Shown piece by piece: positions 29,168 to 52,290 of a stretch of DNA of 64,000 bases. How positions within the stretch are numbered: the first letter of the stretch is position 1; each line of letters opens with the position of its first letter. A program made the position numbers and the translations under genes. Origin of the DNA: Magallana gigas. Its lineage: Eukaryota. The stretch is from assembly GCF_963853765.1 (NCBI RefSeq), contig NC_088858.1, forward strand, positions 2,790,001 to 2,854,000, written 5' to 3'. The notes beneath the pieces are model-generated. The model saw only the letters and a program-made list of their open reading frames with translations, was not told where the DNA came from and made no database searches.

Positions 29168-29885
29168 CTTTGTGGCATTAATCAGGGATTAAGTTGATTC
29201 AGCATGGAAGATTTATTGAACAGGAGTATAGACATGTACTCAGTACTACATACTGTATGTGCATCTTGTGACACTGTAGATTGCATTCATCAAGTACATG
29301 GAAAAAACTACTGTGAATTTCTAAAGGGCATGCTATTACTCTGTTTCAGGAGTTTAATATGACTGGAACCATAGGACATGAATATAAAATTTTGTTATGA
29401 TTGCAGGGACAGTATTTTAAAGATTGAGGATTTAAACATTTACATGTCAATAATGAAATAAAAAATTCAAATAAGGCACAAAGATTATTTTAATGAATTT
29501 GTTAATTTGTTTCATTGTGTTATCTATGCTCGGGTACAATGTAGTTACGTGTACAGGACTGATTTTCTTGACACACAAATCCTTGTTGTCACTGTGGAAC
29601 TTGAAGCTAACATGGCTGCCTATCACTCTGTGACTGTTGAGCTGGGTCAGTGTTTAATATTGAAATCTGCATCTGCTGGCGGATTTTTACGTTACCCAGA
29701 AGTCATTTCATACTGCTCATCTCATTCACTGAACTCTTTTATCACACCCTACTGGTCAGTTCTACTTGACACAGAATAGAGTAGGTCATTTGGTCATTCA
29801 CTGTACTCGAGTGCTGACTTCCTGGGATTAACTGTCGAATTCTGAGCAAGAAGCTGTTTCATCGCTTGCGTTGGAGGATATCATT

Positions 29886-32800
29886 TCATACAGGCATGCC
29901 CAACATGGTGAAGGATTTCCCTGGAATCCCCCCTGTTGGTAGTCTAGACATGACAACCTACGACCAAAGAAATCAGCCATTATATGACATACATATACAT
30001 GTAAATACCGGTATCTTTCATGTCAGATTAACAAATTTCTGAGTAAAGGTTACCATATATATTACACTGTATTATGTATAAATAAAATTTGTTAGTTTAA
30101 ACATGTAAAATAATTTCACACTTGTTTTGTCTATTCCTTAAGTTATTCCTCTCATTAAATTACATGTCAATTAACTTCTTTCTAATGAAATTAAATGATG
30201 CTTAAATTCAATATGTACCTTGGGTTTCTTGAGTGAGGAGGACATATACCCCACACACAGGCTGTCTGTGGTGTGGCCCCACAATACCTCTGCTGTAATG
30301 AAAGGAGTTTTAAAAAATCATAAAATAAGGATGGTGAGCAGAGAACACAAAGAAACTATAACATATAAATAACTTCTCATCTAAAGAAAGGTGTTAAAAA
30401 TATCATTAAATAATAACAGTGAACAGTAACTGAAACTATAACAGGTAAAATTTACCGTAAATAATATTTGTATCATGGATGGTCAGTGTATCATGTAGGT
30501 CAAGGCAACATTGTATATGATACTGTGAAATCATTAGATTTCGTGGTGGCTCATTTTTCGTGGAATTCGTGGGTACCTCTCATCCACGAAATAACATCCA
30601 TCACGAATTGATGAATTAGGGTAATAAAGTCATATTCCCTTTTGTAGATATATATGAATACACGAAATTACGTCCCCACGAACCTGTAAAATTTAAGTCA
30701 TCCACGAAAATTGGCCCCCACGAAATTTAATGATTCCACAGTACATGATGGAGTATGATAATTCATCAAGGTGATTATATGGTTACTGTGCTTTGTATAA
30801 TTTAGAATCTTGATCATTAATATTTCAGTTATAAACATATTTTATTTTTACATGTAGAAGTATGTAAATTATCATTATTGTTCATTACTTAAATTGTTAG
30901 AATTGCTGAATTTAAACAGCAGGCCTAGGTAGACCTACTCCAACACCTGTAATTAGTGTTGTGTCACACCTGTGATGTTTTTACCTGTGTTATCTTCATT
31001 GTGGACCAGAGCCAGAACCCCAGCATACTTCTCCTCCTCCTCAGATAAAAACTCAGACTCTGTCAAAATAAATTTGTCTTAGAAAAATGATGTCTGAATA
31101 TCATAATTAACCCAATTCTTGTTGAATGCATTGCTCTTTGACTGGTCACCTATAACTTTGAAAAAATTTCACATATGGAGACATTTCCTGATAAATAAAC
31201 CTTTCAATTTTCCTCTTGTATAGCGATATTTCAAGATGAACCTATCACTTGTGTATCCCATAGAAGTATCTACTGACATGATATTCTGTTTGAAGCCCTG
31301 AGACAGCCCCAGACTAGCATTTTATAAATTCTGCATGTGTATAATTAAAAATGAACCTTTTAGTTTTTATATCTTTTCGGAGTTTCTACTGACCTAGTAG
31401 ACTCTGTTTGAATCCCTGAGACAGCCCGAGGCTAGCGTTGTTCTCCCTCTGTATGGACATTGCACACTCCCGCGCCAGTACAGTCCTAATGATGTGCTCA
31501 CCACTACCTGTACAGAAGGCAGAGACTACAGTTACTGTCAGCCATGGGATTACAGACATAAGACAAAGTAGAAAGAACAAGATACCATGTATGTACAGAT
31601 CTATACAAATATAGATGTTGTACGATATTACTAATTAGGTTTGTTATTGTGGACTTTGCCGATGCCACAAATTTCTGTAAACAGTCAGTAACAAACCTAA
31701 TAAGTGTTGTTTTGTTCAGGATCTAATGTTTTAAATGTAAACAAACAAAAAATAATATATAACAATTAAATTCATAGCTTAATTCTCTGTTTTTTTACCT
31801 TCCTCGTCAGTCGTGTGTGCAAACCTGGATGCCATTGTAAGATCGTAATATAAGTCATGGACAGAGGGGGGTTACTCTAAATATTTTGGGGCTTAAAAAT
31901 TAAAGGTATGGTTGAACGTTTGTGTAAAAATTCAACTAAAATAACATTACATCCGCCATGTTGCCGTATAAATTTTGACACTCGCCATGTAAAGAAATTT
32001 ATAAGGCAATCATGTGGCGCGATTCATCCGTCTGAGGCAAAACAAAGAATTCTATATGTGCCATTGTTTACATCCAAAATTGTAATCCATGAAAAGCAAG
32101 AGTGACCCTATGTTTGAAACAAAAGTAATCGCTCCTTTATCTCCTTTTACCTGAAATGACTGCACTAACACCTTATTTTTACCTTAACAAACTGCTCCTA
32201 CAACTTATGTGTCATTTAAGTGACTGCTCCTTCACCTTCACCTTCACATTTGCCTGCAGTAACTAAACTAATACCTTATTTTTACCTGAGGTAACAGCTC
32301 ATACACATTTTTTAGCTCACCGAGACGAAGTCAGGGGGAGCTTATGCTATACCCTCGGCGTCGGCGTCGGCGTCGGTGTCGGCGTCGGCGTCCGGACCTG
32401 GTTAAAGTTTTTGTTGCAGGTCCTGTATCTAAGCTATTACTTGTCCTATCTTCACCAAACTTGCATGGATGATGCATCTGGACCTACTTATGGACTGGAA
32501 AGACTTGGATGCTGAATCTGAGTCCTAAATTTCAGATGCTGGAGGAGGTTAAGGTTGTTGGACCAGGTTAAAGTTTTTGTTGCAGGTGCCCTTTGATAGC
32601 AATATCTAAGTTACTGCAGGTCCGTACTTCACCAAACTTGCATGGATGGTGTGTCTTATGATACTGATGCACCAGACAGGCTTGAGTGCTGAATCTGAGC
32701 TATAGATTTCGGATGCTGGAGGAGGTTAAGGTTTTTGGAGCAGGTTAAAGTTTTTGTTGCAGGTGCCCTTTGATAGCAGGCTTGGGTGCTGAATCTAAGC

Positions 32801-35800
32801 TATAGGTTAAAGATGCTGAAGGAGGTTAAGGTTTTTAGAGCTGGTTAAAGTTTTCGTTGCAGGTGCCCTCTGATGATTATATCTTAGTTACTACTTGTCC
32901 TAACTTCACCAGACTTCCATGGATGGTGCATCTTATGATACTGATGCACCAGACTGGCTTGAATGCTGAATCTGAGCCATAGGTTTCGGATGCTGGAGGA
33001 GGTTAAGGTTTTTAGAGCTGGTTAAAGTTTTTGAAACAGTTGCCCTCTGATGATTATATCTTGATTATTACTTGTCCTAACTTCACCAGACTTCCATGGA
33101 TGGTGCGTCTTATGATACTGATGCACCTGACATGCTTGAATGCTGAGTCTGAGCCATAGGTTTCAGATGCTGGATATGGTTAAGTTTTTTGAAACAGGTC
33201 ACATGTTTAATAGATAATAGTACTATTTCAAACTTGTATAGTTGATTAAACTGTAATATGAATGAATCACAGAGGAAGCTTCAGATGCAGAGCTTGATCT
33301 CCATTATCAAGGATGCTTAAAAATATATCTTAGTTATTACAGGTCCTAACTTCACCAAACTTGAATGGATGGTGTGTCTTATGATACAGATGCACCTGAC
33401 ATGCATTGATGTTGAATCTGAGCCATATAGGTTGCGGATGCTGGAGCAGGTTAAGGTTTTAATTGCTAGTGCCCTCTGATGATGATATCTTAGTTATTAC
33501 TGGTCTGAACTTCACCAAACTTGCATGGAGATGCGCCTTATGTGTACTGATGCACTTGACAGGCTTGAATGCTGAATCTGAGCCATAGGTTTCGGATGCT
33601 GGATGAGGTTTAGTTTTTTTGGAACAGGTCACATGTTTTATAGATGATAGCTTGCATAGTTGATTTAACTATATTATAAATAAAACGCAGAGATTGCTTC
33701 AGGTGCAGAGCCTGATTTCCATTATCAAGGATGCTATGAAATCTCCTACCTCACTCAAACCTGCTCGATAGATAGATGTGTTTGTTGATAAATGATATAA
33801 CTTGATTCCTATGATATAGTATTGTATGGTATGAAACAATATTGTTTAATATGATACAATATAATATCATATGTAATATTATAAAAAGTTATATGATACG
33901 ATATGATATTGTATCAATTTTTTTGATATTTTATGTTATGATGTTGTATCATGATATCGTTATGTATAGTATTGTATATTATGATATAATATTGTATAAT
34001 ATTATATTGTATTATTAATTTATTATTTTATCACATGATACTATTACATAAGATATTGCAAAATATAATATTGTATCCTATGATACAATATTTTATATTA
34101 CATAATATTGTACCATATGATGATGTATAATATGATATTAGTTTCTGTAATATAGAATTATATCACATGAAATTGTATAATATGATACTGTAATATTATA
34201 TAATATCGTATTATACGATATTGTATAATATGATATTGGTTTATATATAATATTATATATAATCACATCACATGAAATTGTATTGTATGATATTGTAAAA
34301 TATATTATTGTATCATATGATACAATATGTATAATATAATATTGTATTATATAATATTTTACTTTATCACATAATATTGTATCATTTGATATGATACAAT
34401 GTTGTATCAAATTATATTGTATCATATTATGTATCAAAAATGATACAGTATCATACAATATTTTATATTAAACAATATTATATCATATGTTTCAATGTTA
34501 TGATGTATAGTAATTATGTAATATGATATTGTAATATAATACTATATTAATTTATATATTATGATATTGTATTATGTGATCAAATACAATAACATATAAC
34601 ACAATACAATGTCATATCATACGTTACAATATCATATCTCATCATTGTTTATTATGGTATTTTATTGTTTTATATGATATATGTTGTAAATATGATAGGA
34701 TGCAATATTCAATTTTATATTATTGTATTGATTAAAATATGAACATATGATTATCATACATTTTTTAAACAGATGATATACGATATTGTGTCAAAACAGA
34801 ATCCATGAATATCCAAGATCATAAAGTATGATTTTCATTTAATATGATAAAGGTGGTCTCATAAAGGTGAAGTCTCATAAGGGTGATGTCTCGTCTCGGT
34901 GAGCTTTGTAATCTGTGATTACCTATGTTTTTTATCTGAAGTAACTGCTGCTACACCTTATTGTAACCTGAAGAACTAGTAACTGCTAGTATCTGTTGCT
35001 ATACCTCATTGCTACCTGAAATACTAGTAACTGCTGCATCAACTTTTTTTTACCTAAAGTGTCTGCTTCTATTAGAATGTACTTATTTCACATAAAGTAA
35101 CTTTTACTACAATTTTTATTTACCTGAAGTAACTGCTCCTAAACTTTTTTTTCACCTAAAGTATCTGCTCCTTCACCTTATGTGTACCTTGCTTAATTAC
35201 TATATTTTTACCTTAATCAATAGCTTCATCACCATATTCATGTACATGTACTAGATTTTACCTGATGTTACTGCTACTAAACCTTGTAGCTATCCCTAAA
35301 CTTTATTTTTACCTGAAAGAACTGTTCCTACACCATATATTTACCTGAAGCAACTGTTTCTACAGCTGGGTTTTACCCGAAGTAACTGTTTTTACACTGA
35401 GTTTACCTAAAGTAACTGTTCCTACACCTGGTTTTTACCTGAAGTAACTGTTCCTACACCATATATTTACCTGAAGTAACTGTTCCTACCACCTGGTTTT
35501 TACCTGAAGTAACTGTTCCTACGCCTGGTTTTTACCTGAAGTAACTGTTCCTACACCTGGTTTTTACCTGAAGTAACTGTTCCTACACCTGGTTTTTACT
35601 TGAAGTAACTGTTCCTACACTTGGTTTTTACCTGAAGTAACTGTTCCTACACCATATATTTACCTGAAGTAACTGTTCCTACACCATATATTTACCTGAA
35701 GTAACTGTTCCTACACCTGGTTTTTACCTGAAGTAACTGTTCCTACACCTGGTTTTTACCTGAAGTAACTGTTCCTACACCTGGTTTTTACCTGAAGAAA

Positions 35801-38800
35801 CTGTTCCTACACTTGGTTTTTACCTGAAGTAACTGTTCCTACACCTGGTTTTTACTTGAAGTAACTGTTCCTACACTTGGTTTTTACCTGAAGTAACTGT
35901 TCCTACACCATATATTTACCCGAAGTAACTGTTCCTACCACCTGGTTTTTACCTGAAGTAACTGTTCCTACACCTGGTTTTTACCTGAAGTAACTGTTCC
36001 TACACCTGGTTTTCCTGGCCTCTGGTTGTAGGCCCAACATCCAGCACCATAAATGGCTGCCTGAAATCAAATACACATGTATGTTACAGAGTTTCTTAAG
36101 CATACGCCATTACTCATACATTAAAAAAATTAATGTACAGGTGTGTTTTTGTTTTATATCTTGCATTCATCTGGCCTCTCCGTGACTTGGTCTGATCTAT
36201 ATACATTTACCTAGCCCTGCTATGTCTAAACTTATCTAACAACCTACTGGTCCCAGCCTCCCTGGCTGTTTCAGTGAGATCCCCCCACTAGACACTGCTG
36301 ATGCTATGTTCCCTCTGGTATCCATGACAACAGCTCCCACGGTATCCTGAACAACATCCTTCTCCTCCTGCAGGTCCTCAATCTCCTCGCTTTTGTCATC
36401 ACTCTGAATGAAAATACTGCCATTAAAAATATTCCTTATACATGTATATTGGATAAAAACTGATCTATGAAAAAATGTATATGGTCCAAAACAACCTAAA
36501 CAAGCTAAAAAAAATATTAATTCACAATCTGTAAAGAGAAAAGTGCTGTAATCTTCTCATTTCCATTTCAAATAGTTTGAGAGTTATTGTATTCCTATTT
36601 TACCTGGTGATCTATCTTTCTTTTCTTGCTGACTTTCTGGTTATGAGAGTCAAGTTTTCTTTTGTGGTTATTGTATGTTTTCTGTGATTCATCTACACAA
36701 ATCAAATTCAAAAGACAGTATAACTCAACGCCAAAGAACATTATCAACAGTCATGATAACTTGATACCAAACATCAGTCAACAGTCATGTCAACTCAATG
36801 CCAAATACCCAGTAGTCAACAGTCATGTCAACTCAATGCCAAATACCCAGAAGTCAACAGTCATGTCAACTCAATGCCAAATACCCAGAAGTCAACAGTC
36901 ATGTCAACTCAATGCCAAATACCCAGAAGTCAACAGTCATGTCAACTCAATGCCAAATACCCAGAAGTCAACAGTCATTAACTAGATGCAAAATGAAAGA
37001 GAAAGAGAACTATGTACAATTAGGGATCACTTCCAAACTATTGGTACATGCTGTACTTCTGCATATTAAAAACTTATTTTAAAACAAATCCCTGCTATTC
37101 AGACAGGAATTGGGCACTCTGATTAAAATACAGATCTCTATAATAGCAAAAAGCAGATCAAGAGATCTGAGAAGAAGGCTTACATAGGCATTGCCTGCTG
37201 CCTATTCCATTTATGTAAATGTATTTTTGCATAATAAAATATGTTCAAATCAAATCAAATCAGATCTGAGGTCTACTGTCTTGTATTAACTACACTAGTC
37301 ACCTGTTATCAGGAGTCGAGGGTCCACCTTGTGTATCCCATTAGCCACGGCCCACTGGCTGGCTCCCTCTCCCACAAGAACACTGTGCAAAGTATTCATC
37401 ATATCATATATATATATGTCCAGATAAATCCAAAGATATCCAGAATTCATCATAAGATATCTTCTGTCAGTGTAAAACCCATATGGTCCCGTTATAGAGG
37501 AAATGGTGAATTGCAGATGATAGATTACACACGTTATTTGTTCACTGCTTCTAGAGATTTGGGAAATTGAGTAATAATTGAAATTCAATACACTTGATAT
37601 GAGCAAGATGCCCCATTTGTATGTACATTTACATGTATATGGATTTCTATCAAAATGCTCTTTATCTAAACTGGAAAAAATCAGCTTATATACTTATGAT
37701 AGGATTGAGATATTGGTTTGTACCTGGGATGCAGCCTCCCCAGGGATAACTTTTCCCCAAGCTGTCTGTTGATCAACATGGCCGACACCTCTATTGGGTT
37801 CTGGACACCTTGATAAATATAAAGATCACAATTTCATGTTTACTGCCTGAAATCAGTACCTCTAGTTTGTACCTCAAGCTGGCATACTTTTTAAATCAAG
37901 CTCAATCAATGATAGAATTTTGCAATATGTCACTCATTATATTTCTTGTTTGAACATAATCAGTAATGATTTCTTACCAGAAATGGCTCCGACAGCACCA
38001 AACAGGAGTTTCTTCCCCTCCATAATGGAGGCGTCACACTCCACACAACCTCTGATGTTTAAGCTAGAGCCGCGACCCGCATTGGTTAACTTAGAGTCCT
38101 AAAAATCAGTGTTAAATAAAGAAAACTTATAACTAGTGTACATCTCATAAAATGTAATTTGAAATAACACTAAATAATTAAAAAGAAATTGTTAATCCAT
38201 GTGATTATAATGCTACAAAACTTCTATGTATCTACTTGGAAAAATGTTTTATGCAGAGAAACAGTTCCAGGGACTATGAAGTACATGTATTGTATAAAAC
38301 TGTCTTGCATGCAGTAGCCTTTATGCTATAATTTTCTTTTGTCTGTCATTTGATTTCATTTTGACTGTATGCCAACATTGTGATGTCAATAAACCATTGA
38401 AAAAGAGAATACATGTTAACTTTACATGTTATAGTTCCCTATATGAATACAAATGGTTTTGATGTGAATGTTTCATTATTAATAAATTGAAGGAACATTT
38501 AACCACATTCCCCAATCTACCAATGAAAAACTTGAGGAATACCTCTAACAGTTTGACTGCCTCGGTCACACACTCCACAGCCTCTGAGCCCTTCTCTAAC
38601 ATGTGACACAAAATTACCGCACAATAGTACAACATGACTGCCAAAATAACAGAATAACAGTCAATTCGAAAACTATAATTGATTTTCAGTAAGTTTGCTT
38701 CAACATAGAAATTGAAGGTAGTCCATTAGCTGCACATTAAGTATTTTGTAAAGGACTGATCTTGTCTATATGTTGGTGGATTTACATGCATTCTTTAAAG

Positions 38801-40635
38801 TTTTCCAATTATGAAACAAAATACATGTATGTAACCTTTAAACAAATGGATTTACACAATGTCTTGTATGCCTCCTCCTTTTGTCTAGAGTGATACCCAG
38901 CACCTGGAGAAGGAAAAAGGAAATTGACAAAAAAAGCATATCTGAGAATAATGTATCATAACGATGCATCGCTTAATTTGGTTTTTCTCGAATTGACAGA
39001 AAAGACAGGCAAAGTAATGTCTGGATGTCTTCAGTTCATGGCAATGAAAATCATTACTTTTTAAGACAATAATACTCAAAACTTGCTTTAGGAAATCATT
39101 ATAACAATTTAAAACAACTTTTCAAAAATGAGAGGCCCATGGGTCACATTGCTCATCCAAGGGCAGAGCAGTTCCTACTTTCATCTATTATATCCCTTTC
39201 TTTGTCTTCAGTTTTTTAAATGTTTACATTAAACTCTTAAATTATCTTCACTTTACACTTTACACCTATTACTAAAACTGCCTGGTCCAATTTTATATTA
39301 AATAATGTTAATGCTTTTAAACAATGGTTATGCTGAGTATGTGTATAATAATAGACATTGCAGCAGTTTTCACGGTCAATATACAGCAATATTTCAATGA
39401 GGATCGAAGTAAAGTACAAAAATTTGTTTCCAATTAAAACAAACTTGACATAAATGTACCATGTTATTTTGTCCCATATTAAAATTCGCCACCGATATCA
39501 AGCGGGTATGATTATATCATAACTTTGAATTTGCTCTAAATAAAGGTCATATTGTTTTGCAGGCAAATCAAAAATAAACATGTTTACATTTTTTCCCTAA
39601 TGTTGTAGTTGTGAGATTTGTTTACAACTGATGCATATTATGCTGGTTGAATAAACTCCATCATACATGGGACAATACCAAACGGTTCCCTTTTTCTAAA
39701 CCTGCCCATGTTGCATTTGGTTTGTTTTTAAGTGTTCCCATAAAGATCAAAGGGTGTACAGTGACTTTGAATGATGTTTGAGGTATTAAGTGTCAAGATC
39801 ATATTAGATCACACGAAAAAACTTTTTTCAGAGCATATATATATATTTCTACTTGGCCCTATACTGCCCCTACTTCACATTTACAGAGCTTTTGGATTAA
39901 TGGTGTAGAGTGACTTTATATTTTGAACCAAGTCAATGTGAAGGTCAAAGCAGATCGATCTCTTTATAATCAGTTTCAGACTAAATTATTTCCCATTTGC
40001 TTAACCGTGCTTAGGTTGTATGTTAGGGGTAATGAGATTGAATTTAAAGTTTTATGCCATCTGGAAAATTTTTAAATTATAGGTCAAGGTCAAAACAAAA
40101 TTCTCTGAAATGCTTTTCATCCTATTGTCCATTATTTAAGAGGGGCCCTTTGAGATGGTCACCATCTCAGTGTTGTCTAGTTTTTATTTACTTTGAATAT
40201 TTCTAACTTTGAAAGGAGACCTATTCTGCTGGTGTAAAAAGGCTATAACTTTTTAAGACGATTGGTTTGTATGAAAAATTAATTGTTACTATTATAGCGA
40301 AAAATTTTGACCATGCAGCTTTAAGTACATGTTAAGAAACTATAATAAATATTTTGGGCCCTACTTTTTGGAGGGGGTGTCCAAAATAAAAGTCAACCAG
40401 AAGTAATAGTCAATTAGGAATCTTAATAACTGTTTCGGTAGACAGTAAGTCATGCTCAGGTGAGCTAAAAAGAAAAAAGATCGACTAAAATTATGCACGA
40501 TTTACCAACATCAAATCACTTTCGCATTACCTTACCACTCTAGTACTAACTTTTGGTTAAATACATGTGTGAAAACAAATGTAATAACTAAGAATAAGAA
40601 ATACCACAATGAACTGCGATGACATAGTTTGCCAT
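29886..40635 (-). CDS. TASP1: Threonine aspartase 1 (Taspase-1), Ntn-hydrolase (~363-370 aa)
   Basis: Exons 40635-40605, 38903-38836, ~38593-38543 (acceptor uncertain), 38098-37978, 37808-37724, 37382-37303, 36692-36604, 36403-36248, 36060-35985, 31507-31394, 31059-30985, 30292-30219, 29957-29886. Motifs AVHCGAGYHS, TNAG.GS.LN...VECDASIMEG, autocleavage site QD/TVGAV, SSGGISLKQPGRLG, GAGCWA, TSGSGEH, LWGHTTDSLCVGYM. Confidence 0.93.
30521..30743. mobile_element. ~220-bp MITE, TA TSD, CTGT..ACAG ends
   Basis: TACTGTGAAATCATTA / TAATGATTCCACAGTA; interior rich in CCACGA/TCGTGG. Confidence 0.75.
32308..34930 (+). mobile_element. ~2.6-kb Helentron-associated non-autonomous element (HINE-type) carrying a satellite-like array
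   Basis: 5' TTTTTAGCTCACCGAGACGA; (GGCGTC)n at ~32357-32392; tandem units of ~166-177 bp at ~32400-33700; AT-rich filler at ~33780-34780; 3' subterminal IR TCGTCTCGGTGAGCT (34891-34905) followed by the hairpin GTAATC-TGT-GATTAC (34908-34922). Confidence 0.8.
33780..34780. repeat. Extreme AT-rich low-complexity tract (ATATGATAC-like)
   Basis: Direct reading; lies inside the HINE. Confidence 0.85.
35335..36010 (-). repeat. 32-bp minisatellite whose monomer is the TASP1 exon end plus splice donor
   Basis: Minus-strand monomer CCAGGTGTAGGAACAGTTACTTCAG|GTAAAAA, ~21 copies. The terminal copy is the coding end of exon 36060-35985. Decayed copies at ~34930-35335 and ~32140-32300. Confidence 0.92.
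36770..36977. repeat. 38-bp minisatellite (~5.5 copies) in a TASP1 intron
   Basis: Unit AAGTCAACAGTCATGTCAACTCAATGCCAAATACCCAG. Confidence 0.92.
37172..37261 (+). mobile_element. 5'-truncated non-LTR retroelement 3' end with (TCAAA)n tail and 9-bp TSD
   Basis: Near-identical to 63144-63228; AGATCTGAG at 37163-37171 and 37262-37270; AATAAA before the tail. Confidence 0.75.
39128..40471 (-). mobile_element. ~1.3-kb HINE-type element in TASP1 intron 1
   Basis: Minus-strand start TTTTTAGCTCACCTGAGCATG at 40471; end ...GGATGAGCAATGTGACCCATGGGCCTCT at ~39130. Confidence 0.65.
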
Positions 40636-47865
<7,230 letters not shown>

Positions 47866-49730: not shown

Positions 49731-50029
49731 TATCCAAATAAATGCTATTTATGAACTTGTTGTAGATGGTTATTAATTAACATGCTATGAAACATACACT
49801 GTGTGAAATTTAGACCTTTTTCAGCACCAACTTTAGGTAACATAAGGATTCTAACAAGATTAGCTTGTTGTGATGACTGACGACCATTTTCAGTTACCAT
49901 CACTTGTCGGTATATAAAAATCAAGACTATTTTTCCTACCTTTAGGTGGAGTGTAAACAAAGAGTTCCGCGAAAATCGGTAGCAATATATGTATGTGTAG
50001 AACCACAGATTTCTGTATATTGACCCTAC

Positions 50030-50431
50030 TGTTAACAAATGTTGTAGGATACTGGTAACCTGGGAGTTACATTGACCTTATGTTGTAGGATACTGGTAAA
50101 CTGGGAGTTACCTTGACCCTATGTTGTAGAATACTGGTAACCTGGGAGTTACATTGACCCTATTGTTAACAAATGTTGTAGGATACTGGTAAACTGGGAG
50201 TTACTTTGACCTTTTGTTGTAGGATACTGGTAACCTGGGAGTTACATTGACCCTATGTTGTAGGATACTGGTAACCTGGGAGTTACATTGACCCTATTGT
50301 TAACAAATGTTGTAGGATACTGGTAAACTGGGAGTTACTTTGACCTTTTGTTGTAGGATACTGGTAACCTGGGAGTTACATTGACCCTATGTTGTAGGAT
50401 ACTGGTAACCTGGGAGTTACATTGACCCTAT
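50030..50431. repeat. ~41-bp minisatellite (~9 copies), some units carrying a TTGTTAACAAA insert
   Basis: Unit TGTTGTAGGATACTGGTAACCTGGGAGTTACATTGACCCTA. Confidence 0.92.
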
Positions 50432-52116
50432 GATGCGAGGTTTAACTGTGATTTGGCTAAATGACCTACTTTACCAGTACATGTACTATTATATAAATGA
50501 TTTTCTGCATATTTCTTTCCAACCAAAAGTCAAATTAAGAGTCAATAAATGTTTGCTCAACCACCCACAATAATTACGGGTACTCTGATGTTCAAATTTT
50601 CCACAAGCAATCCATATTGAGAAATTCACATCTCTCCATAAATATTTTCAGAGCTCAAAGCAATAGTAAATGTACACTACACAGTGATACAGTACTGTAC
50701 ATACTGTGTACTCATTGCATGTTGTCAAATCTTGCACACTATTTGTAACAGGCATTTTCTCTTCTTCACTGAACTTTAATTTTGTATATTGTCCTTTGTT
50801 CCACACCGTTCTCTTCGTGATAAACTTCACAACACACCAACAGATTTTGACAATTTTATTTCAATCATAGTGCCTGCCTTCATTATTTTCAATCCATTCA
50901 AAACAACAATCACCCCTATACTTATTTATGGCATTACATGAATAATCAATAAATAATTGTTACATAATTATTATAACAGTGAATAATCTATCACATGATC
51001 AACAATCAAAAAATATTCACTCTTGAGTATACAAAAAGAAAAAGCAACATCTACCTACAGTGTATGTTCAAAAATTAAGTACTATTTAGCAGCTTAAAGT
51101 CACGGTTGGAAAAGATAGCGATTTTTTCATTTGCAGCAAATCAACGAAAATAAACTCCGCGAGTTTTTTTCCTGCTATAAAGTAAGTATGAAGTGGAAAT
51201 TATCTGAGACATATTAATACAGTACTCGTGCCTGCATTATAGCACCTTGCATCACCTGATGCCCACAGGTAAGCGCACCCATGACTGACAAGATTTCCCT
51301 GTGGCTGAATGCCATGTACATAATTATGTAATACCTTACATCAGCTACATATATATATGTCCACAGGTAATTGTTCATGTAACCAGTAGCCAGTTTCAAA
51401 CTATTACTGATACAGAATTCATGTAATGGACGATTTCTTACAAAAATCACAACACTTCAAGTACAATACACATTCTTCTGATATTGCTTATGGTTATTTA
51501 ATCCTCACTACTCCCTAGGAAGACAGAATCTAAGAATTCTTTATATAAATGGTTGATTGTAGTCTGTTTAACTGATAGAGAAGAGGAGGATAAGTTATGT
51601 CTTTGTATGTGTCAGGAATAACTAATTATCTATAACTATCAGAATTTCGTAAAATCAATTATACACACAATGTATGTATATGTACTAGACAATCAACCAA
51701 ATCTTGAGAGGATTTCAAAAAATATCAAAATACTTCATCGAACAAGGTACCCTGGAAATATCATATCAATAAGTACATCTGCAATTACAATCTTAATTCT
51801 CAATATTCAAATCAACAAAAATAGTTTCAAAAAATGTTAACATAAACTTTTGTCAGGGATAACAAAATTAGGTTTTGTTTTCTGGAGAATTTTATCAGGT
51901 CTTTGTAGAACAGACATTTAACATTTGAATTCTGACTTTCTTGGTCTACCATGCCTATCTTTTATACATACATGTTACATTTATCTGCCATAATTTCCTA
52001 ACAAATAAACAATTAAACTAGCATAGGTATCACAAGCATTTCAACAAGGTTCTTATTCTTCATGGATTTCACCAAAGATATTAAGTGAACAATAAGCTTA
52101 GTATACATTGTAAATA

Positions 52117-52290
52117 TCGTTATCCTTAGTGTACAGTGTAGCTATTGTTATCCTTAGTGAACAGTGTAGCTATTGTTATCCTTAGTGTAAAGTGTAGCTA
52201 TCGTAATCCTTAGTGAACAGTGTAGCTATCGTTATCTTTAGTATACAGTGTAGCTATCATTATCCTTAGTGTAAAGTGTAGCTATCGTTA
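52117..52290. repeat. 28-bp minisatellite (~6 copies) downstream of the CHP1 stop
   Basis: Unit TATCCTTAGTGTACAGTGTAGCTATTGT. Confidence 0.9.

Follow-up and report, generated by a model that had tools for sequence, protein, structure and literature searches.

A minisatellite reiterating an exon end and 5' splice site of the TASP1 gene in the oyster Magallana gigas

We analysed a stretch of 64,000 nucleotides (nt) from the genome of the oyster Magallana (Crassostrea) gigas (RefSeq assembly GCF_963853765.1, contig NC_088858.1, positions 2,790,001 to 2,854,000), referred to here as the window, in whose coordinates positions are given unless another sequence is named. The minus strand of the window carries TASP1, the gene for taspase-1. 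At the end of its ninth coding exon, the last exonic nucleotides and the adjoining 5' splice site (donor) are repeated head to tail in a minisatellite with a unit of 32 base pairs (bp). This kind of repeat is already known; the oyster TASP1 array is a real, old, still-evolving and well-assembled-looking member, and it shows every structural feature of the class that was tested. The explanation that we favor, to which we give a probability of about three in four, is that the array is a junction-spanning minisatellite of the "mirage" type, that is, a tolerated variable number of tandem repeats (VNTR) locus whose pseudo-donors are silent or nearly silent. Regulatory readings are possible, although so far without support.

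The repeated exon end and its gene

TRF reported a period of 32 bp, 22.1 copies, 89% matches and a score of 1104 for positions 35306-36013, and our own parsing gave 22 units head to tail, running from 36009 down to 35306 on the minus strand. The 76-nt exon ends in ...CCAGGTGTAGGAACAGTTACTTCAG, followed by GTAAAAA, with the donor GT at 35984-35983. Unit 1 therefore consists of the last 25-29 exonic nt plus GTAAAAA, in agreement with a preliminary description of this DNA, which had identified the unit as the TASP1 exon end joined to its 5' splice site. That description counted 25 coding nt per monomer; the exon end is indeed contained in the unit, but the homology between exon and array reaches 29 nt, since the unit shares the four A's that precede CCAGG as well. 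A search with a 21-nt core gave 24 matches in the 64-kb window against 0.00 expected, all of them inside the array, and the array itself is far beyond chance. Its parts and the exons that it separates are as follows.

35985..36060, minus strand: TASP1 coding exon of 76 nt (AAIYGAGCWAYNQRPGKPGVGTVTS plus G), which contributes its last 29 nt to array unit 1 (translation, tblastn with oyster TASP1 proteins, mRNA contig alignments).
35306..36013, minus strand: well-preserved 32-bp minisatellite of 22 units, the first being the exon end plus donor (TRF, unit parse, core search, donor inspection).
34906..35305, minus strand: about 12 decayed units, which together with units 19-22 make up the old block (TRF, unit parse, comparison with congener contig L007).
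32140..32313, minus strand: about five further decayed units past an insertion, for example ...TTACCTCAGGTAAAAA (sequence reading, alignments).
31395..31507, minus strand: next TASP1 exon, (G)SGEHIIRTVLARECAMSIQRENNASLGLSQGFKQSLL, whose acceptor is the partner of the array-side donor (tblastn, mRNA contig alignments).

The intron that carries the array extends over 35984..31508 (4477 nt), and the first base of the next exon is 31507. The exon at 36060..35985, the donor at 35984 and the acceptor at 31507 are thus as first described. So is the count of about 21 copies behind the true donor, most of them with its sequence: GT is kept in 22/22 units and CAG|GTAAA in 17/22; without the authentic donor, the latter count is 16/21. 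The remaining five donors read CAA|GT (two units), CGG|GT (two units) and TAG|GT (one unit). Seven units, namely 1, 2, 6, 8, 9, 14 and 15, are mutually identical over 32 bp. The array donor matches the CAG|GTAAGT consensus at 7/9 positions and is among the better donors of TASP1. Reading past the first donor gives GGT AAA AAC CAG GTG TAG (...TVTSGKNQV and a stop), and any distal donor meets this TAG 18 nt past the first donor. Distal donors with the sequence of the authentic one, each giving a premature stop, had been predicted and are what we found.

Preservation of the units changes abruptly along the array. Identity to unit 1 is 88-100% for units 1-18, 84-91% for units 19-22 and much lower from unit 23 onwards. 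The earlier statement that copies decay with distance is correct in that later units are worse, but the decay is a step between two age classes rather than a smooth gradient. Similarly, the outer limit of about 32140 was right, but the array is not continuous up to that point, two thirds of the interval being an unrelated, transposon-like insertion. Units 1-18 make up the young block, which has a partly higher-order structure: sequence variants recur in it as multi-unit blocks (units 4-6 equal 12-14, and 3-4 equal 17-18), which indicates that blocks of units were duplicated recently. With a 32-bp head-to-tail array, a first unit that spans the exon-intron boundary and a reiterated splice site, the locus has the anatomy of the mirages of amphioxus and of the repeat in intron 7 (IVS7) of human F7.

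The host gene is the TASP1 orthologue of M. gigas, as the preliminary description had it. Two exons upstream of the array match Pfam Asparaginase_2, with E values of 9.3e-11 (36248..36403, the exon encoding DTVGAV) and 5e-9, and the best PDB match of the DTVGAV exon was human threonine aspartase 1 (2a8i). Oyster TASP1 proteins were reached by a search with this exon and then by a search with the full-length match. Among them is the RefSeq protein "threonine aspartase 1 isoform X1" of Magallana gigas (XP_065945356.1, P0265 in our collection), the coding locus of which is an exact substring of the window (41135..29386, minus strand; assembly GCA_963853765.1, chromosome OY970750.1) and adjoins Sec24. 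Protein searches and mRNA contig alignment place TASP1 between about 40635 and 29889, with 13 exons. The amplified exon had been called catalytic. It does encode the lead-in to the TSGxGE loop, but the catalytic Thr (DTVGAV) lies in the exon before it:

36248..36403, minus strand: preceding TASP1 exon with the catalytic DTVGAV motif (Pfam Asparaginase_2, PDB 2a8i).

Older C. gigas models of the gene (P0279, P0280, P0294 and P0154) are truncated (...LLITGD) or have an apparent retained-intron segment (RSSEQITCV...) in another part of the gene; the newer model has 369 amino acids.

Donor use in transcripts

Our transcript evidence consists of 320 collected proteins, RefSeq models and assembled RNA-seq contigs, and it shows dominant isoforms only. 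Wherever these sources cover the spliced junction, splicing occurs at the first donor. It is joined to the exon starting at 31507 in the RefSeq model, and the M. gigas RNA-seq contig L017, which is 98-100% identical to the window exons, reads ...GGAACAGTTACTTCAG|GTAGTGGTGAGCAC, with splicing after ...ACTTCAG|. Ten RNA contigs from two congeners (L001-L006 and L010-L013) also splice at the first donor, and so do 45/45 junction-spanning proteins among the 320, in each case joined to the SGEH exon. The use of distal donors, which the preliminary description had entertained, is not borne out: no distal-donor isoform occurs among these 45 products, although assembled contigs cannot exclude rare products sensitive to nonsense-mediated decay (NMD). 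Five proteins do end in GKNQV and a stop; these also retain the upstream intron and hence come from unspliced or genomic contigs.

A natural test of what follows the loss of a donor is provided by the TASP1 exon end at 30985 (30967-30990, minus strand), where the sequence ACACAG|GTAAAAACATCACAG|GT offers two donors 15 nt apart. In contig L017 (1889-1945) AT replaces the first GT, and splicing at the second donor adds five amino acids in frame (P0275, NTDKSITAEV). Loss of a first donor thus leads the oyster splicing machinery to the tandem donor that follows.

If the pseudo-donors of the array were under selection, their donor core might be expected to outlast the rest of the unit. In the old units of both species, 80% of donor-core cells match compared to 71% in the rest of the unit (Fisher p 0.005), but four positions at which the young consensus departs from the old units explain most of this gap. 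These comparisons argue only weakly for selection on the pseudo-donors, the core being not clearly better kept than the remainder of the unit.

The first part of the same M. gigas contig (L017:1-746) consists of six spliced blocks upstream, which map to window positions 43185-41025. That region is annotated as Sec24 on the opposite strand, and the blocks suggest either long exons of a 5' untranslated region or a read-through or antisense transcript.

Origin, age and surroundings of the array

The peptide PGVGT[VS]TSGSGEH, which runs across the junction, is common to M. gigas, M. angulata, Ostrea edulis, Saccostrea and two further Crassostrea/Magallana species known from RNA-seq alone. Its counterpart in C. 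virginica is PGIGTVTSGSGEH, and the loop to which the oyster exon-end peptide belongs can be aligned in further animals, such as a chiton with ...GVAVSTSGCGEH. Because the exon end is conserved across oysters, we take it to be ancestral coding sequence, and the minisatellite to have been made from TASP1, not the reverse. The opposite derivation, in which the exon end was captured from a satellite or transposon, was considered and rejected: within the window the unit is confined to the array, and the coding end is conserved across oyster genera.

The two age classes differ in a way that identifies the source of the younger one. Young units carry the states of the exon (CC at unit positions 1-2, and GGAACAG); old units have TA or AA and GGAGCAG. 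It follows that the exon-proximal copy seeded the recent expansion. In the simplest picture, the protein-constrained exon copy would act as a master beside which new units are born. The earlier suggestion that exon end and array evolve in concert reads better reversed, with the constrained exon copy reseeding the array.

An unspliced 2.2-kb contig from a congener (L007; introns about 84% identical to the window) contains this exon, with about 11 decayed units immediately behind it. These are collinear with window units 19-31, the pairs being u2-w19, u4-w20 (97%), u6-w22, u8-w27, u9-w29 and u12-w31, and the homogeneous young block is absent. The collinearity of decayed units shows that the array predates the split of the two species. 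M. gigas would then have gained about 17 units since the split. The alternative, collapse of the array in the short-read contig L007, is argued against by its unique first and second units. Copy number has turned over strongly between species, with a young block of about 17 units in the single M. gigas assembly and none in L007. We also considered that a divergent second M. gigas paralogue might be represented by P0003, P0151 and L007, and rejected it: every protein named as M. gigas or M. angulata has the sequence type of the window, and by synteny the window gene lies beside Sec24, as do the C. virginica gene and one of the two Saccostrea echinata copies (copy A).

In C. virginica the orthologous intron is 619 nt long and contains its own donor string, CAGGTATGACAAAG, seven times; an eighth match (7910) lies in the next intron. 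Over the 11.8-kb C. virginica locus there are 11 matches compared to 1.64 expected, and 0/200 shuffles reached 11. In this region (L009:7100-7606) the copies of the donor motif are decayed, 15 bp are tandemly duplicated directly at the donor, and a (GA)24 microsatellite is present. These repeats may share ancestry with the Magallana array or may have arisen independently. At the corresponding junction of both Saccostrea species no array was found, and the same exon-exon join is annotated. An ungapped 24-mer scan with each species' own unit returned nothing in C. virginica or Saccostrea, the shuffle null used being a poor one for repetitive sequence. The S. echinata intron does contain, about 65 nt from its start, a single exact match to an 11-mer of the Magallana unit; by a rough estimate the chance of this is about 0.01, and as a relic of the array it is only suggestive and of doubtful significance.

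The old block of the M. gigas array was later split:

32314..34905, strand not assigned: Cg_HINE-like (non-autonomous Helentron) insertion, 2592 bp, splitting the old array (sequence, TRF, inverted-terminus search; architecture compared with PMC7492417).

The termini of the insertion are perfect 15-bp inverted repeats that are present nowhere else in the window. Between them lie a (TCGGCG)n microsatellite (32355-32392), tandem repeats of 177 bp (32450-33190, also with periods of 100 and 277 bp) and about 1 kb of AT-rich low-complexity sequence. The insertion is flanked by T|T and has no target duplication. Cg_HINE Helentrons of this species have short subterminal inverted repeats, a microsatellite near one end and central tandem repeats, and they insert at T-rich or TT sites without target duplication (PMC7492417). 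The insertion fits this description and is called Cg_HINE-like on the basis of its architecture.

The junction at the end of the next exon has been duplicated as well. In M. gigas, a decayed second copy of that exon end and its donor lies about 125 nt into the following intron:

31265..31321, minus strand: decayed repeat of the end and donor region of that exon, left over from a second junction duplication (tblastn, alignments).

S. echinata has two tandem TASP1 copies about 30 kb apart on JAVQLB010000002.1, namely copy A (L014) and copy B (L008), and both show repeats at this second junction. Copy A has about three decayed copies (L014:19283-19450). In copy B there is an array of about ten copies of a 55-bp unit (L008:22877-23441), which comprises the last 44 exonic nt plus GTCAGTGACT and has 20-bp sub-duplications. 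Copy B also has three residues missing at the PGV..TSG site, where its intron measures 4.9 kb, and its annotated protein is truncated, with 263 amino acids; it may be a decaying paralogue.

How surprising is it that an array sits at a donor? The window holds roughly ten minisatellites in 64 kb. If seed units measure about 30 bp and donors are spaced a few kb apart, around 1% of arrays would be expected to start across a donor by a rough reckoning, so that the position of the array is not obviously beyond chance. We keep a modest probability for a mutational hotspot or a function, mainly because junction repeats recur within this one gene.

Minisatellites elsewhere in the window include a 38-bp repeat (36776-36978; 5.3 copies, 99% identity) located two introns upstream of the array intron and touching no exon boundary. 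Contig L007 appears to hold about one copy of its unit, since several window diagonals match one L007 stretch. The neighbouring Sec24 region has two more, at 50019-50432 (periods of 41 and 134 bp) and 52097-52290 (period of 28 bp). The 41-bp unit of the former contains CTGGTAA strings, and no adjoining exon is evident.

Competing explanations and known systems

In the explanation that we favor, a tandem duplication of the TASP1 exon end and its 5' splice site would have started the array, and unequal exchange or replication slippage would account for its later turnover. Selection on the protein, in which PGVGTVTS leads into the TSGxGE loop, would hold the exonic copy as the master; new units would arise next to it while older ones drift away and decay, and the Helentron-like insertion would later have split a stretch of the old block. 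The spliceosome would take the most upstream donor, the only one that preserves the reading frame, leaving the 21 downstream copies silent or nearly so. Where donor 2 or 3 is occasionally used, the transcript would meet the stop 18 nt past the first donor and presumably be removed by NMD. If the first donor wins, an array behind it is harmless, and this would explain why such arrays persist.

Several observations weigh against this explanation. RNA-seq contigs and RefSeq models would miss low-level, NMD-sensitive products of donors 2 and 3, and two human genes, IFI6 and CBS, do splice at their two nearest pseudo-sites (PMC1557585). Repeats at the same junction in two genera, together with those at the next junction in Saccostrea and the Magallana relic, in our judgement exceed the purely random expectation for one gene. 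The donor core, too, is slightly better preserved in the old units (80% vs 71%, p 0.005), even if four consensus-shift positions explain most of the difference.

One alternative is that the copies form a rheostat of decoy donors: distal splicing would give premature-stop transcripts that are degraded, and copy number would set the ratio of productive to unproductive mRNA and thereby the dosage of TASP1. The array offers 16 pseudo-donors that match the authentic site over CAG|GTAAA and six units (2, 6, 8, 9, 14 and 15) equal to unit 1 over 32 bp, every pseudo-donor leads to the TAG 18 nt past donor 1, proximal pseudo-sites are used in IFI6 and CBS, and the exon end at 30985 in L017 demonstrates that the oyster spliceosome can use downstream tandem donors. 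We nevertheless consider such a rheostat unlikely. No distal-donor isoform appears in the 45 junction-spanning products, and even strengthened pseudo-sites of F7 fail to compete with the upstream site. Moreover, copy number is very different between congeners while protein and junction are conserved, and in the old units the donor core does not stand out clearly as more conserved. It could also be speculated that the ladder of donor-like sites recruits the U1 small nuclear ribonucleoprotein and, with the extra sites left unspliced, suppresses premature cleavage and polyadenylation in the AT-rich 4.5-kb intron or reinforces definition of the 76-nt exon. Suppression of intronic polyadenylation by U1 is established, many consensus-like U1 sites lie just downstream of this short exon, the decayed units contain AATAAA-like strings, and the slight preservation of the donor core points in the same direction. 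However, that conservation signal is weak and the Saccostrea orthologues have no array at this junction while the same exon-exon join is annotated, and we regard a U1 landing pad as quite improbable. A cell-wide U1 "sponge" is implausible, given the great abundance of U1 compared to the roughly 20 sites that a single gene offers.

A further alternative is stepwise removal of the array by self-similar recursive splicing, in which the exon would join the AG of a distal unit, regenerate a donor and leave no trace in the mRNA. The unit sequence TTACTTCAG|GTAAAA does juxtapose 3' and 5' splice sites as ratchet points do, and joining would recreate ...CTTCAG|GTAAAA. Of the features of a ratchet point (a strong polypyrimidine tract, AG|GT and a very long intron), however, AG|GT alone is present: 9/20 nucleotides before the unit AG are pyrimidines, compared to the clearly pyrimidine-rich tract ctctgccttctgtacag at the real acceptor, and the intron measures only 4.5 kb. 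Known recursive splice sites sit in very long introns, and we give this mode of splicing next to no weight. An equally slight chance attaches to an assembly artefact, that is, over-expansion or mis-assembly of the homogeneous block. Assembly errors are common in near-identical tandem units, and the homogeneous block is missing from the short-read congener contig L007. On the other hand, ordered, distinct variants (a GG insertion, TATGG, CCAAG/CAAG and ATA) recur in multi-unit blocks, unlike collapse or stutter; the block is flanked by orthologous decayed units; and the array, at 0.7 kb, is far shorter than the long reads from which we take the M. gigas assembly to have been built.

A tolerated junction-spanning minisatellite would probably have little effect on TASP1 itself, as the enzyme would be made normally. 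Its interest lies elsewhere. The array is a well-dated natural ladder of 22 near-identical 5' splice sites, far from the mammals in which the rule that the most upstream donor wins was worked out, and it has a built-in readout, since any slip gives a stop codon. As a VNTR within a gene it could serve as a marker, and repeats of this kind bear on the origin of such repeats, on intron and exon evolution and on errors in gene models. Taken together with the repeats at the second TASP1 junction, the array suggests that boundary-spanning minisatellites may be common in oysters, as they are in amphioxus, also a highly polymorphic, repeat-rich marine invertebrate. A stronger version, in which donor-spanning mirages, undescribed in molluscs, are regenerated recurrently across oyster genomes, strikes us as doubtful. 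If true, it would suggest either that 5' splice sites are mutational hotspots or that selection favors reiterated U1 sites or tunable unproductive splicing, and oysters would offer a natural library of donor ladders in which to study the choice of the first 5' splice site.

Novelty, which the preliminary description had implied, is confined to the locus and the animal. Our literature searches returned nothing on taspase in oyster or on junction-spanning minisatellites in oysters, and no description at this locus turned up; the kind of repeat has been described in human genes (PMC1557585) and in amphioxus (PMC3087553, PMC3902484). Human minisatellites with a first unit across an exon-intron boundary occur in F7, IFI6, CBS, LMNB2 and PDGFA; in most such genes only the authentic site is used, and in IFI6 (6-16) and CBS splicing also occurs at the two nearest pseudo-sites (PMC1557585). 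IFI6 intron 2 and CBS intron 13 resemble the oyster intron in having many donors behind an exon, with 25 pseudo-sites in 6-16 and 15-20 units in CBS (PMC1557585). Their two nearest pseudo-sites are used constitutively, in contrast to the oyster, where no such isoform was found and the pseudo-donors are out of frame with an immediate stop. At the other end of the scale are short-distance tandem 5' splice sites, duplicated donors a few nt apart that give alternative products. TASP1 itself has an example in the two donors 15 nt apart at exon end 30985; the 32-bp array differs in being a long ladder, each step of which is out of frame or contains a stop.

The closest human parallel is F7 IVS7, a 37-bp VNTR with 5-9 units in which the pseudo-sites are functional and yet the most upstream site is used (Borensztajn et al. 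2006, PMC1557585). As in the oyster, an authentic donor is followed by identical pseudo-donors and the most upstream one is used, and the activity of F7 pseudo-sites when the upstream one is lost is paralleled by the 15-nt tandem donor in L017. The two differ in composition, F7 repeating 4 exonic and 33 intronic nt compared to 25-29 exonic and at most 7 intronic nt in the oyster; in size, with 5-9 units compared to at least 22 plus about 17 decayed ones; and in the kind of evidence, the behaviour of F7 being known from minigenes and the oyster array here from sequence and transcripts.

The amphioxus mirages affect Adh3, troponin C, the globins BflGb6/9 and PGBD5 and leave splicing undisturbed; haplotypes differ in them, and such repeats are suspected to occur throughout the amphioxus genome (PMC3087553, PMC3902484). 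They belong to another phylum, their published units of 10-160 bp include acceptor-side cases, and somatic and allelic instability has been shown for them. In both animals, exon-intron boundaries are tandemly duplicated in an invertebrate with a repeat-rich, highly polymorphic genome, the inner units are homogenised while those at the edge have diverged, and the mRNAs are normal.

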